From the sequence record MW845758.1: DNA of 64,000 bases; one strand, given 5' to 3'. The notes beneath the pieces are model-generated. The model worked only from the letters and a program-made list of their open reading frames with translations, searched no databases and had not been told where the DNA came from. The position numbers and the translations under genes are program-made. Position 1 is the stretch's first letter; each line of letters opens with the position of its first letter. Positions 3,851-19,057 of the stretch are shown here, in pieces.

Positions 3851-3872
3851 CAGATATATATCATTACGGTGA
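3851..3872 (+). promoter_or_regulatory. Putative early promoter, 22-bp motif, copy 1
   Basis: CAGATATATATCATTACGGTGA; matches six other copies with identical spacing. Confidence 0.7.
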
Positions 3873-4452: not shown

Positions 4453-4635
4453 ATGACCATCTCAGGACTGGGTTCCAACTACGGCTTAGAAAGAGCACGT
4501 GTCTCCCCTGAGGAGCGTCATGCTCGTATCCAAGCCCGCATCAACATGCTGACCATTGACTTGGCAGCAGCGAAAGCCCGAGGCGACGTTAAAGAAGCCG
4601 AACGCATCGCAGCACAAATCGCAACATTAAACTAA
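4453..4635 (+). CDS. Small helical-hairpin protein (60 aa)
   Basis: RBS-like GGGG upstream; LAAAKARGDVKEAERIAAQI helical hairpin. Confidence 0.75.
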   Translation: MTISGLGSNYGLERARVSPEERHARIQARINMLTIDLAAAKARGDVKEAERIAAQIATLN

Positions 4636-4657
4636 TCGACTATTTAAGAGGCCTATC

Positions 4658-4798
4658 ATGACTCGCAACGTTAAGAAAGTTATCATCGCTACCGTTCTGT
4701 CCTTCCTGCTGGTAAGTGCGTACGTCGTACTGAACAACGATTACAACACTTGCCGCGCTAACGGCAACTCCGATGCAATGTGCACAGGACGCGGCTAA
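4658..4798 (+). CDS. Small membrane peptide (46 aa), not in the ORF track
   Basis: GAGG RBS; MTRNVKKVIIATVLSFLLVSAYVVLNNDYNTCRANGNSDAMCTGRG; one hydrophobic helix and a Cys pair. Confidence 0.7.
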   Translation: MTRNVKKVIIATVLSFLLVSAYVVLNNDYNTCRANGNSDAMCTGRG

Positions 4799-4980
4799 TG
4801 TTTAACGATTCAACTTTCGCTGAGTTCCTGACTAACCCTCGCATCAAACGCGAGTGGGATAACCTGTCCAATGGTGTGAAGCACCGCGAACAGGAAGACG
4901 AGGCAGTCCGTGTGACTGCCCAAGTATTCACCGTGGATTCAATGGGTACTGTAAACCCAATGGAGTTCTGTCATGACTGA
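4798..4980 (+). CDS. Hypothetical protein (60 aa)
   Basis: TAATG coupling with the previous ORF favours a start at 4798 over 4780. Confidence 0.65.
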   Translation: MFNDSTFAEFLTNPRIKREWDNLSNGVKHREQEDEAVRVTAQVFTVDSMGTVNPMEFCHD

Positions 4981-5533
4981 AGATAACAAACCAACCGGCA
5001 AAGGCGTGATTGTAAAAGTCGCCTCTGATAGCGTATTGCCGCAGACCGAAGATGGTCTGGTTGGCGAAATACATCGCCCGGGTTACATCGAAACCCGAGG
5101 CTTGGGTGGTGAGCAAGACCCGCATTGGTGGAAAAATGCTGAGGCTAAACGGGCGAATGATGTTCTGGCTAGCGGTCAGTACGGGGCATTCGGCACCAGT
5201 CTTGAGTTACAGGAGCTACTGAACAGCGGTCGCATTATTACTATCGCGCACGCTGGACAGAACAAGGACTTCGACGGGGACGTTGCAATTCCACACTGGG
5301 CTAAGCAACGTAGCTTGTTCGAACAAACCCCAAAGCCTAAAGAATCGCGTTCGGTTAAGAACTACCGTAATGTGATGAACGGACTTATCAGTCGTGCGGC
5401 GAAGCCTACGTATCGACAAAAGCCTAACCGTTCACACGGTGAAACTGAATTCGATTCAACGAATCGCCTCAGCCCGATTGAACTCGACCACGTCGCTTTG
5501 AACAAAAGCATTGACGATATGTTAAAGAAATAA
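4973..5533 (+). CDS. Hypothetical protein (186 aa)
   Basis: GGAG RBS; followed by a terminator. Confidence 0.75.
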   Translation: MTEDNKPTGKGVIVKVASDSVLPQTEDGLVGEIHRPGYIETRGLGGEQDPHWWKNAEAKRANDVLASGQYGAFGTSLELQELLNSGRIITIAHAGQNKDFDGDVAIPHWAKQRSLFEQTPKPKESRSVKNYRNVMNGLISRAAKPTYRQKPNRSHGETEFDSTNRLSPIELDHVALNKSIDDMLKK

Positions 5534-6622: not shown

Positions 6623-7303
6623 ATGACTAAAGTTTTCGATTTCTGGCACGCGTTTAATGCTAAGTATTCTTTCTCTGAAGAAGACAACCTGTTTGTCTCG
6701 TATAACGAGCAATACGAGCTGGGTATGCGCAAGCTCGACAACGGGTGGGGTGTCATCGGCATCGACTTTGAAGGCACTATGGTGCACGAGCAACTTTTCC
6801 CGATGCATGACAAAGACCCTCAGTCCTACCTACGTGCCGCCCTAGAGGCCACTGCGCATGCCATGTTAACGATACTGACCGGGGTGTGGTCTGCGAAAGA
6901 CCGCGACTTATACCTGCGTGATTTGTTCACACTGGTTCGCCAAATCAACAACAACCTCAAAGACCCGGAAGTTGAAGAACTCCTGCGCCGCATTAAAGAG
7001 CCACATGATGGCGTTGACCACGCCCCAGACGGCATCTACTGGAACGCCAGTAAGTTTATCCGTAAAGTGTACCCGGATGAAATGCCAACCGTCCAATACA
7101 CCAACGGTGAGCTGGTCTTTATCGCTCGCCCGCACTACGACGGCCATCAGGTAGAGTTCCTCGCAATGGCTTTCCAAGGCGATGTCAGCCTTCAGGCAAG
7201 AAAGATGATTGGCTGGACAATGGAATACGAAGAAACTCTTGACGAGTTGCTGACGCAGTTTAAAGGCAACGTGGATAAACTCGGCTGGAAGCTTTTCTCT
7301 TAG
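6623..7303 (+). CDS. Hypothetical protein (226 aa)
   Basis: TGTAAGGAG RBS. Confidence 0.8.
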   Translation: MTKVFDFWHAFNAKYSFSEEDNLFVSYNEQYELGMRKLDNGWGVIGIDFEGTMVHEQLFPMHDKDPQSYLRAALEATAHAMLTILTGVWSAKDRDLYLRDLFTLVRQINNNLKDPEVEELLRRIKEPHDGVDHAPDGIYWNASKFIRKVYPDEMPTVQYTNGELVFIARPHYDGHQVEFLAMAFQGDVSLQARKMIGWTMEYEETLDELLTQFKGNVDKLGWKLFS

Positions 7304-7354: not shown

Positions 7355-7388
7355 AAAGAAAATAAAAGGCGTCCTCCCGAAGGAGGAC
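7355..7388 (-). terminator. Intrinsic terminator on the minus strand, closing sRNA unit C
   Basis: Minus strand reads GTCCTCC-TTCG-GGAGGAC-GCCTTTTATTTTCTTT. Confidence 0.8.
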
Positions 7389-7413
7389 ATTTCGCAATGC
7401 ACAGGAGTACATT

Positions 7414-7563
7414 ATGCAAACCTTTAAAGAGCACCTTCAACGGGCGCTCACCCAGCAACAATCCTATCAACAGCGTGTGCAGGCGTTACAGCGCCAACCT
7501 ACGCAACGTAATGGCAACGTATTAAAAGGATTAGGGGGTGATATCATCTTCAACAAGAGCTAG
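7414..7563 (+). CDS. Small Gln-rich ORF (49 aa), not in the ORF track
   Basis: AGGAG RBS 6 nt before ATG; MQTFKEHLQRALTQQQSYQQRVQALQRQPTQRNGNVLKGLGGDIIFNKS. No obvious plus-strand promoter. Confidence 0.5.
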   Translation: MQTFKEHLQRALTQQQSYQQRVQALQRQPTQRNGNVLKGLGGDIIFNKS

Positions 7564-7655
7564 CTGAAAGCTTAATCCTAAGTGGGTGTTGACGCACCCA
7601 CTTAGACTACCAGCATAGTAAGAACCGCCGCTGTTATTTTTTTTTGTTCCGGCAC

Positions 7656-7797
7656 AAAAAAAGTGAAAGGTTGTTCCCCCCGAAGAGAGAACACTCCACC
7701 CCAGGAAAGAGCTGGACGACCTTTCGAAAGTAAAACAACACATGGTTAGCGCAGAGTGGGATTACAAGGGGGATGGGTTGACGACGCATAATCCCAC
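7656..7797 (-). ncRNA. Candidate late small RNA, unit B (about 142 nt), with a 5' hairpin and a 3' three-way junction
   Basis: TTTTAC-N15-TATG; 11-bp 5' stem starting at +1; UUCG-capped stem with GU pairs on this strand only; ends in U7. Confidence 0.6.
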
Positions 7798-7817
7798 ATA
7801 GAGACTCACCGACCTGT

Positions 7818-7853
7818 AAAAAAATAAAAAGACCCCCACCATCCGGTAGGGGT
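7818..7853 (-). terminator. Intrinsic terminator for the helicase and sRNA unit A
   Basis: Minus strand reads ACCCCTACC-GGAT-GGTGGGGGT-CTTTTTATTTTTTT. Confidence 0.8.
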
Positions 7854-7907
7854 GAACTAGAACAAGACAGTGTCGATTTTCAGTTGTGTAGAGCGGTATT
7901 GCCCTAC
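7818..7907 (-). ncRNA. Candidate small RNA, unit A (about 90 nt), or processed helicase 3' UTR
   Basis: TATG at 7910-7907; 5' stem GUAGGGC/GCUCUAC starts at the G; ends at the terminator. Confidence 0.4.
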
Positions 7908-7965
7908 ATAGAAAACGAGGGCGGCACATCTAAACCACCCGAGAGCCGAAGCTCCCGGGCAGCTG

Positions 7966-9534
7966 TTAAAACAAATCGTCGCCCATGCCACCGGTGAAGT
8001 GGTTGATTGAAGGCGCGGAAATGGTTTCTTCTTTATCGCAATCCCAAGGTAGGATGCCAACGTCATGGAAGGGCAGCACTGTGTAGTGATGCTTCTCAGG
8101 CGTATCAATAATTGTGCGGTGTTTGCCTCGCTGCACTTCGAGGTAGCTGTGGCCGTTGACCACACGCTTGTTAAAGAACATTTCGCCATCCGCCTCGTTG
8201 TCAAGGCTGGTACAGTTGTCGTAGAGTCCACGACCTGGGAGGCTCTTACAGAAGCCTACTGGGTCAAGCGTACGCGCTTGTTTACCCGCGGGTGATATTT
8301 GATGCGGTGCAAGGGCAAAGCCTCGCTGACGGACCACCATGATGTTACGGACGATGCGGTAGATTTCTTTTATGTCTGTACCTGCAATACCGTTACCGTG
8401 GCCTGCCTTGTTAATCGTGCCGAAGTAATCGCCACGCAACCCAACAACATGGAATCCGCGAGTTTTCAAATCGGAAATCAGGTCATTGAGGTAATGAACT
8501 TTAAAGTCGGTGTTGGTGTGTTTCTGGAACACGTAATCCCAACCCTTCTGACGAATCTTACCACAGAGGTAATCCGCCATTGCTTGCGTATGAGCTTTCT
8601 GCTCTTCCGGTGTCAGATTCTCCGGAGCAGTCATCTGAGGCGCAACGCCTTCGAAGTGTCCGTGAATCGCTTGGTAACCGTAAGCGATGTTTACATCCAA
8701 TTCATTCTCAAACGACAAATCCAGAATACACGGTTGCAGTGTACCCTTCACATCGACCATGACTTCTTCAGGTGTGTTGAAGATAGGCAGGCTTAACGAC
8801 GTCAACAAACTGAACAGCGATTTACAGTTAAACGGTAGGGCCGGCATTAACCACAGTTCTTCGGTTAAACCTTTGTTACAACCGAGCATGGCATTAATAC
8901 CTTTCCATCCGGTTTGTAATCCGTTACCTGCTGCTTTCTTGTTGATACTGTCAAACACTTTCACAAATGGTGCGGTGTTATTTGTCACGAGCTCATTGAC
9001 AAGACTTGGAATCTTATTATGAGAACGTTCACCGAACGTGGAGAGTGAGTCACGTAGTTCGTTAACAGCGGTCGACAGGTCGATACGTTGTTCGGTGCCA
9101 TTCAAAGCACCGAGGGCGCGACCCAGCTTTTGTTTTAGTTGGACACCCTGCAACGCATGACGCATTTGATAATACTGTTGGCTCACGACTTTTTGCAGAT
9201 ACTGCAAACGAGCCTCAGGGTCGGTTGGTGTGTCTTCGTCCTCTTCCATGTTTTTAACAATGGAATCATATAGGGGACGGGTTTGCGTCGTCGCCAACCT
9301 GACACGCTTCATGACCTGTGAATGGTCGTACTCGACACCATGGTCAACAATCGATGTGATGATGTCTTTGATCTCGGCTAAGGCGGAACGTTCGTCGCCT
9401 TCTTCGATGAACTCAGGCAGCCTAGCTTCCTGCAGCACTTTTCTTATGACGTCGTGGTCTTTGACCGGGTCACTAAGAAGGCTCTCCGCGTGTAGCGTAG
9501 CTAAGGCTGTAATCAACATCATTTTACTATTCAT
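7966..9534 (-). CDS. dnaB: DnaB-like replicative helicase (phiKZ gp118-type)
   Basis: GLQTGWKGINAMLG, degenerate Walker A ALPFNCKS, Walker B RGDYF, HQIS, DNEAD and RGKHR motifs; divergent from the capsid operon as in phiKZ-like phages. Confidence 0.85.
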   Translation of the reverse strand: MNSKMMLITALATLHAESLLSDPVKDHDVIRKVLQEARLPEFIEEGDERSALAEIKDIITSIVDHGVEYDHSQVMKRVRLATTQTRPLYDSIVKNMEEDEDTPTDPEARLQYLQKVVSQQYYQMRHALQGVQLKQKLGRALGALNGTEQRIDLSTAVNELRDSLSTFGERSHNKIPSLVNELVTNNTAPFVKVFDSINKKAAGNGLQTGWKGINAMLGCNKGLTEELWLMPALPFNCKSLFSLLTSLSLPIFNTPEEVMVDVKGTLQPCILDLSFENELDVNIAYGYQAIHGHFEGVAPQMTAPENLTPEEQKAHTQAMADYLCGKIRQKGWDYVFQKHTNTDFKVHYLNDLISDLKTRGFHVVGLRGDYFGTINKAGHGNGIAGTDIKEIYRIVRNIMVVRQRGFALAPHQISPAGKQARTLDPVGFCKSLPGRGLYDNCTSLDNEADGEMFFNKRVVNGHSYLEVQRGKHRTIIDTPEKHHYTVLPFHDVGILPWDCDKEETISAPSINHFTGGMGDDLF

Positions 9535-17473: not shown

Positions 17474-19057
17474 ATGTCCGTAACTATTGAACAAGTAAAG
17501 GGTGTTTTACAGACCGCACGTAACAGCGATCAGACGCTGGCGCAGTTGATTGATGCTTCCAATAAGTTGGGCGTGTCAATGAATGATGCAGCGAAAGTGG
17601 GTGCAGCAATTGCGAACATCGCAATCGCGAAAGGGGTGGGTAACGATGCAGCAGCGAATTCGCTGGTTGATGCGTTTAAGGCAGCTCTGTATCAGGGTCT
17701 GGTACAGAAAGGACAACGTCTGCCGGACAACATGCATAATGCGTTGACGCAAAACTTCCAAGCAGCTGTGGCGATGATCAAACAACAGCAGGGTGCACAG
17801 TCTGGTGGTTCGATTCTGGGTGGTGGTAGCGGTAACGCTGGCGGTGGTAGCATCTCACTGGCCTTAGCCGGTGGCGGTGGTATTCCGTTAACGGTAGAAC
17901 CGGTTACTACTGCGCCAGCACCGTCTGCCAGTCTGAGTGTTCTGACCGCGGGTGTTGCTGTAGAACCAGCAGCGACATTAACGGCAGCGACAGTAGCACC
18001 GACCGCTCCAGCGCAGACACTGGTGTTTGAAGACACGCAAAACAACCCACAAATCGCTTCTCTGTCAGGTGACAACAGCGATAACCTCAACGATAGCCTT
18101 TTTGACCTGATGGATGGTGACATGGAAACTTATGCAGCGCATGAATTGGAAGTGAAACTGGAGCGTGTCTCCAAGACCGCAAAACAAGCTAACAATGACG
18201 TGAAGCTTTTCTCTGAAGGCGGTAACTGGCGTGAAGAGCTGTCAGCGATCACCACCCGTGAAGCCGGTGCAGTGTATTTCAACGATGCGGACATTCTGGT
18301 GCGTATTGATGAAGACCTGCGTACGTACTACGTGGGCCACGATGAAAGCGACAAAGATATTATCCGTAGCTTCTTCGAAACGCACCGCGTGCAGATGGAT
18401 GGTCTGGCTAAAGCGCAGGAAATTACTGACGTTGAGAAGTTGATCGCGCTGGTATCTGGCACGGTGGCGAAACTGCGTAAGAATGCAGTCGACCTGTTCT
18501 CCAAAGTGAATGCCGGTGATTTCTCAACGGTTACTACCGCGAGCGAAACCCGTCGTTTCATCAACAGCTATCTGTACCTGCTGGATATTCATGTGCACAA
18601 TGCGCTGTCTATCATGACCGTTGGCGGTACCGTTATCCCAACGGGTCGTCGTGTATCACTGGAACGTAAAGCAGAAGATCTGGAATACTTCACCACGAAC
18701 GTATTCCAATCCACTGTTGGTGAGAACGGCGAGAGCACCGAAGAAGATTGGTTCCGTGAGCTGCTGGAAATGGTAGCAGTATCGCTGGGCAAACATCTGG
18801 TGCGTATGGAAGATGGCGGTACCATGCTGATTCTGTCTCACACGCTGGCAACAGTGGTGATTCCGGGTACGTACGGTGCAGTTGATAAAGAACACGTCAT
18901 CGGTACGCACACACTGAGCGCAACGTCTGACGCAGTTACTGAAATCTTCGAAGAGCTGTACAAGCACAAGCCTAACATGAATGTGATTCTGGAAACACCA
19001 ACCGGTAAACATTTGCTGTTGAGCTGTGGTGGTGTTGGCGCAGCCATTCGCTACTAA
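17474..19057 (+). CDS. Conserved, highly expressed hypothetical protein (527 aa)
   Basis: CTGTAAGGAG RBS; strong codon bias; Gly/Ala/Pro/Thr linker between two domains. Confidence 0.8.
   Translation: MSVTIEQVKGVLQTARNSDQTLAQLIDASNKLGVSMNDAAKVGAAIANIAIAKGVGNDAAANSLVDAFKAALYQGLVQKGQRLPDNMHNALTQNFQAAVAMIKQQQGAQSGGSILGGGSGNAGGGSISLALAGGGGIPLTVEPVTTAPAPSASLSVLTAGVAVEPAATLTAATVAPTAPAQTLVFEDTQNNPQIASLSGDNSDNLNDSLFDLMDGDMETYAAHELEVKLERVSKTAKQANNDVKLFSEGGNWREELSAITTREAGAVYFNDADILVRIDEDLRTYYVGHDESDKDIIRSFFETHRVQMDGLAKAQEITDVEKLIALVSGTVAKLRKNAVDLFSKVNAGDFSTVTTASETRRFINSYLYLLDIHVHNALSIMTVGGTVIPTGRRVSLERKAEDLEYFTTNVFQSTVGENGESTEEDWFRELLEMVAVSLGKHLVRMEDGGTMLILSHTLATVVIPGTYGAVDKEHVIGTHTLSATSDAVTEIFEELYKHKPNMNVILETPTGKHLLLSCGGVGAAIRY

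Follow-up and report, generated by a model that had tools for sequence, protein, structure and literature searches.

Enterobacterial trans-acting small RNAs of the Hfq type are made up of a 5' stem-loop, a U-rich single strand upstream of a Rho-independent terminator and a U-tail. The element considered here, Unit B of the Erwinia phage pEa_SNUABM_11, is reminiscent of these RNAs in its length of ~140 nt, its 5' stem-loop, its U-rich stretch before the terminator and its U-tail, but it differs from them in that its terminator is branched, that it lacks a conserved seed matching a target within the phage genome and that it has no identified promoter. As for the small RNAs of nucleus-forming jumbo phages, their mapping has only begun, and to our knowledge none has a known function. 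In two such phages of Pseudomonas, 201phi2-1 and phiKZ, small RNAs have been mapped by ONT-cappable-seq, and among them are units of less than 250 nt in which a start site is closely followed by a terminator, some of them being intergenic and having a two-dimensional structure conserved across related phages; the conserved one among them is an element of the 5' UTR ahead of a tail gene (PMC11512511). Unit B is likewise short, intergenic, terminator-ended and conserved in structure, but it is known from sequence alone whereas those RNAs were found experimentally, and no sequence or Rfam link connects it to them.

The window analysed is a stretch of 64,000 nucleotides (MW845758.1, positions 62001-126000) of the 251-kb Wellingtonvirus pEa_SNUABM_11 (pEa11 in the following), which is kin of the SPN3US/phiKZ-like jumbo phages that encode their own multisubunit RNA polymerases. 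Unit B is found downstream of the helicase gene in a 660-bp intergenic region between convergent genes, and the features of this region are, in coordinates of the window:

ending at 7303, plus strand: gp87, the convergent neighbour
7365..7425, minus strand: Y-shaped terminator of the small-gene cassette (Unit C), which folded alone gives -27.0 kcal/mol, z -4.6 and 0/200 shuffles as good
7414-7563, plus strand: conserved small gene of 48-49 aa between gp87 and the helicase gene
7645..7820, minus strand: the Unit B module as an indel of ~175 nt in alignments to related phages, right after T1
7797..7656, minus strand: Unit B RNA, 142 nt
7756..7797, minus strand: P1 hairpin (5' arm 7797-7787, loop 7786-7767, 3' arm 7766-7756), pair probabilities 0.87-1.0
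7726..7755, minus strand: single-stranded linker of 30 nt, U-rich in its 3' half
7665..7725, minus strand: Y-shaped three-way junction, z -3.0 to -3.2
7725-7719 with 7671-7665, minus strand: closing stem GAAAGGU/ACCUUUC, 7 bp
7716-7709 with 7702-7695, minus strand: P2, UCCAGCUC/GGGGUGGA, with one G.G mismatch
7693-7685 with 7680-7672, minus strand: P3, UGUUCUCUC-UUCG-GGGGGAACA, 9 bp with a UUCG loop
7656..7664, minus strand: AC followed by U7, the U-tract of the predicted intrinsic terminator, abutting the closing stem
7797..7800, minus strand: TATG, candidate transcription start motif directly 5' of P1, its G (7797) being the first P1 base
7903-7911, 7793-7801 and 7610-7618, minus strand: CTATGNNGG, at the 5' ends of the successive terminator-ended Units A, B and C
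7820..7853, minus strand: T1, the intrinsic terminator of the helicase gene found by terminator scan (9-bp stem at 7853-7832 plus T-run), directly preceding Unit B
ending at 7966, minus strand: DnaB-like helicase gene, 3' of which Unit B lies

An earlier note on this DNA had described an RNA on the minus strand at 7797..7656, and all its stems, the C-rich loop, the three-way junction, the UUCG and the U7 are indeed present in the sequence, the same structure being both the minimum free energy (MFE) and the centroid fold of RNAfold (-42.8 kcal/mol, z -2.4, pair probabilities 0.8-1.0). The P1 stem (GUGGGAUUAUG/UGUAAUCCCAC) consists of nine Watson-Crick and two G.U pairs, and its loop has 20 nt as originally described and 22 nt as RNAfold pairs P1. 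The linker had been recognised as U-rich, but the description passes directly from P1 to UGUGUUGUUUUACUUUC, 15 nt (UCUGCGCUAACCAUG) having been omitted from what is truly a 30-nt segment. A complementarity of CCAUCCC in the loop to GGGGUGG, 7 bp including one G.U, exists as well. Shuffled sequences fold as well as Unit B in 3/200 and 9/500 cases, and by domain the z-score is -2.6 for P1, -3.2 for the three-way junction with the U-run and -4.0 for P3. The opposite strand reaches -32.1 kcal/mol (z -0.2) and is no better than shuffled sequence, since several of the pairs are G.U.

Homologs of Unit B were reached only by way of the neighbouring small protein and the helicase, after direct searches had failed: DNA searches of phages, plasmids and E. 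coli genomes matched only pEa11 itself, exact-seed and hairpin-pattern scans of IMG/VR gave chance matches only, and a pattern of the conserved blocks had no match in IMG/VR or GTDB. Nor did Rfam give a match at the gathering threshold in the window, and permissive scans of three lineages returned only sub-threshold and inconsistent hits. A second copy was not found in the complete 251-kb pEa11 genome by covariance-model scan, and an ERIC-like repeat was ruled out, the E. coli genomes being without a match. A small protein of 90% identity gave access to three Logan contigs (L098-L100), and the cluster of helicases at 90% identity, whose representative is 95% identical to that of pEa11, led to two JGI contigs (L101, L102) and two further Logan contigs (L103, L104). 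All of these contigs, L098 to L104, carry Unit B at the same place, as judged from nhmmer and covariance-model matches, and it is thus found in every recovered phage of the same helicase cluster, in six distinct copies from three lineages.

Outside this cluster Unit B is absent from relatives with a helicase identity of 80-82%. T1 is conserved in Kwan, L003, L098 and L101, but Kwan has only T1 and an opposing terminator at this place, and the IMG/VR relative L003 has T1 and the small-gene cassette with exactly 7820-7645 missing; Wellington is likewise without Unit B. In L101, L102 and L103, Unit B occurs without the small-gene cassette and in L098 both are found. Four alleles therefore exist, namely Unit A alone and A with B, with C or with both, which makes Unit B an independent module, and the alignments show it as a discrete cassette that has been gained or lost as a unit. 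The phage Wellington (L004, ~4620-5150; also L012) has in the same helicase-downstream region an insertion of ~530 bp with a 154-aa ORF, and the region is thereby confirmed as a hotspot at which several different cargoes have been inserted. It should also be mentioned that a JGI homolog of the DnaB-like helicase (P0004) is labelled 'CRISPR/Cas system CSM-associated protein Csm2 small subunit', a name which is apparently a misannotation, given that Pfam assigns divDNAB.

The decisive evidence that the structure exceeds what chance would provide is, to judge from the sequences compared, the folding of the six copies. Although the helicase 3' end is ~95% identical across lineages, the copies of Unit B share just 64-75% of their sequence (for Unit A, pEa11 and L101 have 96% identity), and yet each of them, folded separately, gives one and the same architecture, in which P1, with a loop of 22-23 nt, is followed by an unpaired linker, the three-way junction and the U-run. 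In the homologous copies the fold of the sense strand is favoured over that of the antisense strand by 7-10 kcal/mol; the fold of L104 has a z of only -0.7. In a model-guided alignment 92.6% of the pair cells are standard pairs, as compared to 45-60% with slid partners. Compensatory changes are found in P1, the closing stem and P2 among the six copies of the three lineages. Within P1 a 7-bp core, GGGAYUA/UARUCCC, is present in all copies, with U-A replaced by C-G at its pair 7. The innermost pair of the closing stem is U-A, U.G or C-G across lineages, and two pairs of P3 are U.G in some copies and U-A in others. P2 forms a hairpin in all the lineages even though its 5' arm differs (UCCAGCUC, CUCCCC and ACUGACUU), and in its homologous register of eight positions, with a mismatch at position 5 and a six-nt loop, there are two pairs in which both partners are replaced, one going from U-A to A-U and the other along the path A-U, G.U, G-C; in the L098 group the P2 register is ambiguous, the homologous one lying 3-6 kcal/mol above the MFE. 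A column-shuffle control of the covariation is not significant (44/500, three lineages), because there are only three independent lineages.

The P1 loop has a conserved core, GUCRRC(C)CAUCC, the block GGGGYGG is invariant, and the terminal T-run of 7-9 is present in all copies. The linker, which is ~21-28 nt in the homologs and mostly unpaired in every separate fold, is poorly conserved and contains indels. In phages which are ~95-96% identical in helicase DNA and Unit A, the stems are near-invariant, and the 5' half of the loop, the linker and the 5' arm of P2 are scrambled. A six-frame comparison of the three lineages revealed no conserved reading frame on either strand, and the view that this is a structured minus-strand RNA rather than a protein gene is borne out by this together with the compensatory changes and the strand-specific G.U pairs. 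On these grounds the stems appear to be under selection, and that all four helices are kept by selection on the RNA strand is supported by the comparison. Since the fold is kept in three lineages, Unit B is, as far as the sequences tell, a real and lineage-specific structured non-coding RNA module of the helicase strand.

The 3' domain of Unit B, in which P3 is nested in the 7-bp closing stem followed by AC and U7, was flagged by a terminator scan and is kept in the six copies. Its G.U pairs allow this fold on the minus strand only, and it is a predicted Rho-independent (intrinsic) terminator with a Y shape. The same shape, consisting of an AAAGG/CCUUU closing stem directly at the U-run and of two hairpins, one of them capped by UUCG, is obtained when the cassette terminators of pEa11, L003, L098 and SPN3US are folded alone (z -3.6 to -5.3). 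The Unit B domain furthermore aligns to the cassette terminators of L003 (z 11.3, 0/300 shuffles), pEa29 (z 5.1) and SPAsTU (z 4.7), and it is thus paralogous to the terminator that closes the neighbouring small-gene cassette. The two have in common the strand, the closing stem (G)AAAGG/CCUUU(C) at the U-run, the UUCG-capped GC-rich P3 and the position of P2, but the P2 of the cassette opposes the ribosome-binding site and start of a real gene whereas Unit B is without an opposing gene, and Unit B in turn has a 5' hairpin of its own, P1, no more than ~30 nt upstream and is not tied to the presence of the cassette. At its 5' end Unit B has CTATGTGGGATTA, which is similar to a 5' motif conserved among the cassettes (match to Huxley, z 3.0), and in view of the terminator homology and this shared motif Unit B looks like a compact paralog of the helicase-strand unit of the cassette, minus the part overlapping the gene.

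The recurrence of the Y shape as a terminator, both in the adjacent cassette and in SPN3US-like phages, also means that the junction is not a core like that of the phi29 pRNA, with which it had been compared. Both RNAs are phage-encoded and contain a three-way junction, but the covariance model of the pRNA (Rfam Phage_pRNA) gives no match to Unit B either at the gathering threshold or at E up to 10. In addition, the junction of Unit B ends in a U-run terminator and has no supported interlocking loops, and its location in a 251-kb Wellingtonvirus, a phage of another family than phi29, is between a helicase gene and genes of small hypothetical proteins, away from the packaging genes.

As to where transcription of Unit B might start, late promoters of phiKZ consist of TATG with the +1 position at the G (PMC4666361, PMC7598289). 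The motif abutting P1 is TATG in pEa11 and the L101 type and TATA in the L098 type, and TATG is invariant in 12/12 related cassettes; that it acts as a promoter at Unit B may be considered a lead only. The longer motif CTATGNNGG occurs in five copies in the 64-kb window, both strands considered, and three of these are found within 310 nt on the minus strand. Upstream of 64 genes of pEa11, TATG has no clear association with gene starts, and CTATGNNGG was rejected as a genome-wide promoter motif, being local. Neither a sigma-70-like site nor the early-type AT-rich motif (AGATAKATNTYAT) precedes Unit B, and the literature yielded no transcriptome of an SPN3US-like phage. An AT-rich motif, AGATA[GT]AT[ATG]T[CTA]AT, with GTG ~5 nt later, is found on the plus strand at 3852, 12495, 14603, 37786, 39114, 49154 and 56378, in positions after terminators and upstream of genes, and is probably the early promoter of pEa11, that is, the one used by the virion RNA polymerase. 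Translation initiation has an extended motif of its own, the highly conserved TGTAAGGAGTAAT before ATG (e.g. 17474, 19118, 38694, 39779 and 40480), which is longer than a plain Shine-Dalgarno sequence.

Two functional ideas put forward for the loop find little agreement with the data. The first, that its C-rich sequence is an anti-Shine-Dalgarno seed, is not supported, the C5 run not being conserved (CCAUCCAUAGG in one lineage) and complementarity to initiation regions not being enriched, with the loop pairing more weakly to those of 61 phage genes than to random windows (mean -9.8 vs -11.8 kcal/mol). No outlier target was furthermore found in the 251-kb phage genome for the loop, its conserved core or the linker. 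The best non-self duplex of the P1 loop in the window, at 17626-17650 on the plus strand (-30.7 kcal/mol, ~20/24 nt paired), lies inside the ORF 17474-19057 and is probably due to chance. The second idea, a pseudoknot switch in which the loop competes with P2, is made unlikely by the facts that in 29-93% of trials a shuffled loop equals or surpasses the real one in its pairing with the G-rich 3' domain, that at the U/C polymorphism in GGGG[U/C]GG the P2 pair follows as A-U, G.U or G-C and the pseudoknot pair is broken, and that a loop change from U to A in L104 also breaks a pseudoknot pair.

The reading which we consider probable is that Unit B is a minus-strand non-coding RNA module, consisting of a 5' hairpin, a single-stranded U-rich linker and a Y-terminator, that both stops transcription and releases a stable RNA. 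A polymerase moving in the helicase direction, having either started at the TAT(G/A) abutting P1 or read through T1, would stop at the closing stem and U7, and this stop would shield the convergent genes from antisense transcription. The RNA thereby released would be stable, ~130-142 nt long and with both ends locked in helices, and the loop core GUCRRCCAUCC and the GGGGYGG block would be candidate contact surfaces for an RNA or protein partner. A transcription stop between the convergent genes with release of a ~140-nt RNA is the best-supported part of this as predicted from the fold, and a role in trans of the RNA so released is possible.

It could be argued that Unit B is purely a back-up terminator or insulator in cis within the helicase 3' region, which catches read-through of T1, has neither a promoter of its own nor a function in trans, and in which P1 and the junction merely stabilise the 3' end. 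The position directly after T1 and between convergent genes is in agreement with this notion, and so are the failure to identify a promoter, whether sigma-70-like or of the early type, and the observation that among the parts of Unit B the Y-terminator is conserved best and turns up again in the neighbouring cassettes; in Machinavirus and Seoulvirus, moreover, no hairpin with a T-run is seen by eye from the helicase stop to the terminator after the cassette. T1 is however already strong, and in the L101 type Unit B is retained although it is flanked by T1 and a third, bidirectional terminator downstream, so that a simple back-up would be redundant and yet is kept in all four members of the cluster. 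A terminator also has no need of P1, which lies ~70 nt upstream and is conserved with a compensatory change, and we therefore find a function limited to back-up termination rather unlikely.

That Unit B is the decaying remnant of a duplicated small-gene cassette, i.e. a KGLGG pseudogene with its flanking hairpins and no present function, seems improbable to us. The notion stems from the two tandem small genes which SPN3US-type phages have at this position, from the homology of the 3' domain to the cassette terminator and the match of CTATGTGGGATTA to the cassette 5' motif described above, and from a faint 'KG.G' on the opposite strand. However, the middle of Unit B has no detectable similarity to the small gene, a profile of which finds the terminator only, the opposite-strand frames are not conserved, and Unit B is still present in a lineage from which the small gene has been lost or was always absent. 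A decaying remnant is furthermore in poor agreement with helices that are kept by compensatory and wobble changes at the same time as the unpaired blocks are scrambled.

This alternation of invariant and scrambled blocks between near-identical phages is the sole feature which, in our comparison, hints at something beyond housekeeping. One might imagine that Unit B is an RNA scaffold carrying interchangeable recognition blocks, the variable segments of which keep pace with a rapidly evolving partner, for example a component of host defence or a transcript of the host or the phage, and although we think this quite doubtful, it would if true make Unit B a phage counter-defence or guide-like RNA and not a housekeeping terminator.

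The remaining alternatives fare worse. A strand-specific single-stranded DNA element that forms its hairpins in DNA, for instance a primosome-assembly or origin signal, is suggested by the adjoining DnaB-like helicase gene and by the strand specificity of the structure, but it is highly improbable given that the 3' end is a textbook RNA terminator (GC-rich UUCG hairpin, closing stem and U-run) common to neighbouring cassettes that end transcription units, and that close relatives replicate without Unit B. To a small protein encoded in Unit B, be it by the minus-strand ORF of 51 aa at 7789..7634 or by a short plus-strand ORF, we give practically no credence, since open frames of ~50 codons do occur on the minus strand in every lineage but would be expected by chance on a strand that by eye looks low in A, differ by lineage in frame, start codon and unrelated peptide, with an ATG followed directly by TAA in L101 at the pEa11 start, have no usable ribosome-binding-site spacing, run across the terminator and U-run, are absent from a 15-billion-protein collection, and have, by six degenerate peptide seeds across Unit B, no relative among the matches listed in viral, GTDB-genome and JGI metagenome collections. 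One JGI metagenome match, L089, was set aside as an unrelated high-GC locus with, by eye, an acyl-carrier-protein gene.

If it is only a terminator module, Unit B is ordinary, but if the released RNA does act in trans, it would be among the first tractable small RNAs of a jumbo phage in an Enterobacterales host. In either case it is a defined candidate from the SPN3US/Wellington group, for which exact boundaries and a structure modelled by comparison are available in the form of an alignment and a covariance model, and nature has provided 'deletion alleles' in Kwan and L003, which are without Unit B, and in L101, which has Unit B but not the small gene. The branched Y-terminator recurring at the locus also suggests a local logic of antisense and termination between convergent genes.

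The adjacent small-gene cassette offers some observations in its own right. The small proteins form a family of 47-49 aa with the C-terminal motif KGLGG[DE]I[ILV][FL]xK (7414-7563 on the plus strand, L003, L007 with two copies, L008, L009 and L090-L098), whose genes are always found between the gp85/87-like and the DnaB-like helicase genes of Seoulvirus, Machinavirus and Wellingtonvirus in zero, one or two tandem copies, and which is annotated as hypothetical protein in every record fetched. A type I toxin-antitoxin system was rejected, as the opposing small protein is by eye hydrophilic and Q-rich. The P2 of the Unit C terminator lies antisense to the translation start of the gene at 7414-7563, covering both its ribosome-binding site and its start codon, which suggests that this hairpin may exert antisense or structural control of the translation of the small gene, and in the equivalent regions of L003, L007 and L098 the second hairpin is likewise antisense to both of these elements. 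Unit C also has a hairpin a short way after the small gene, at 7578-7605, which can be read on either strand and displays clear covariation across phages (CTAAGTGGGTG, CTAACCCGGTG, TACCCGAGTG, CTAGCCGGTG and others), and in pEa_SNUABM_6 the pair that varies is G.U when read on the small-gene strand but C.A on that of the helicase.
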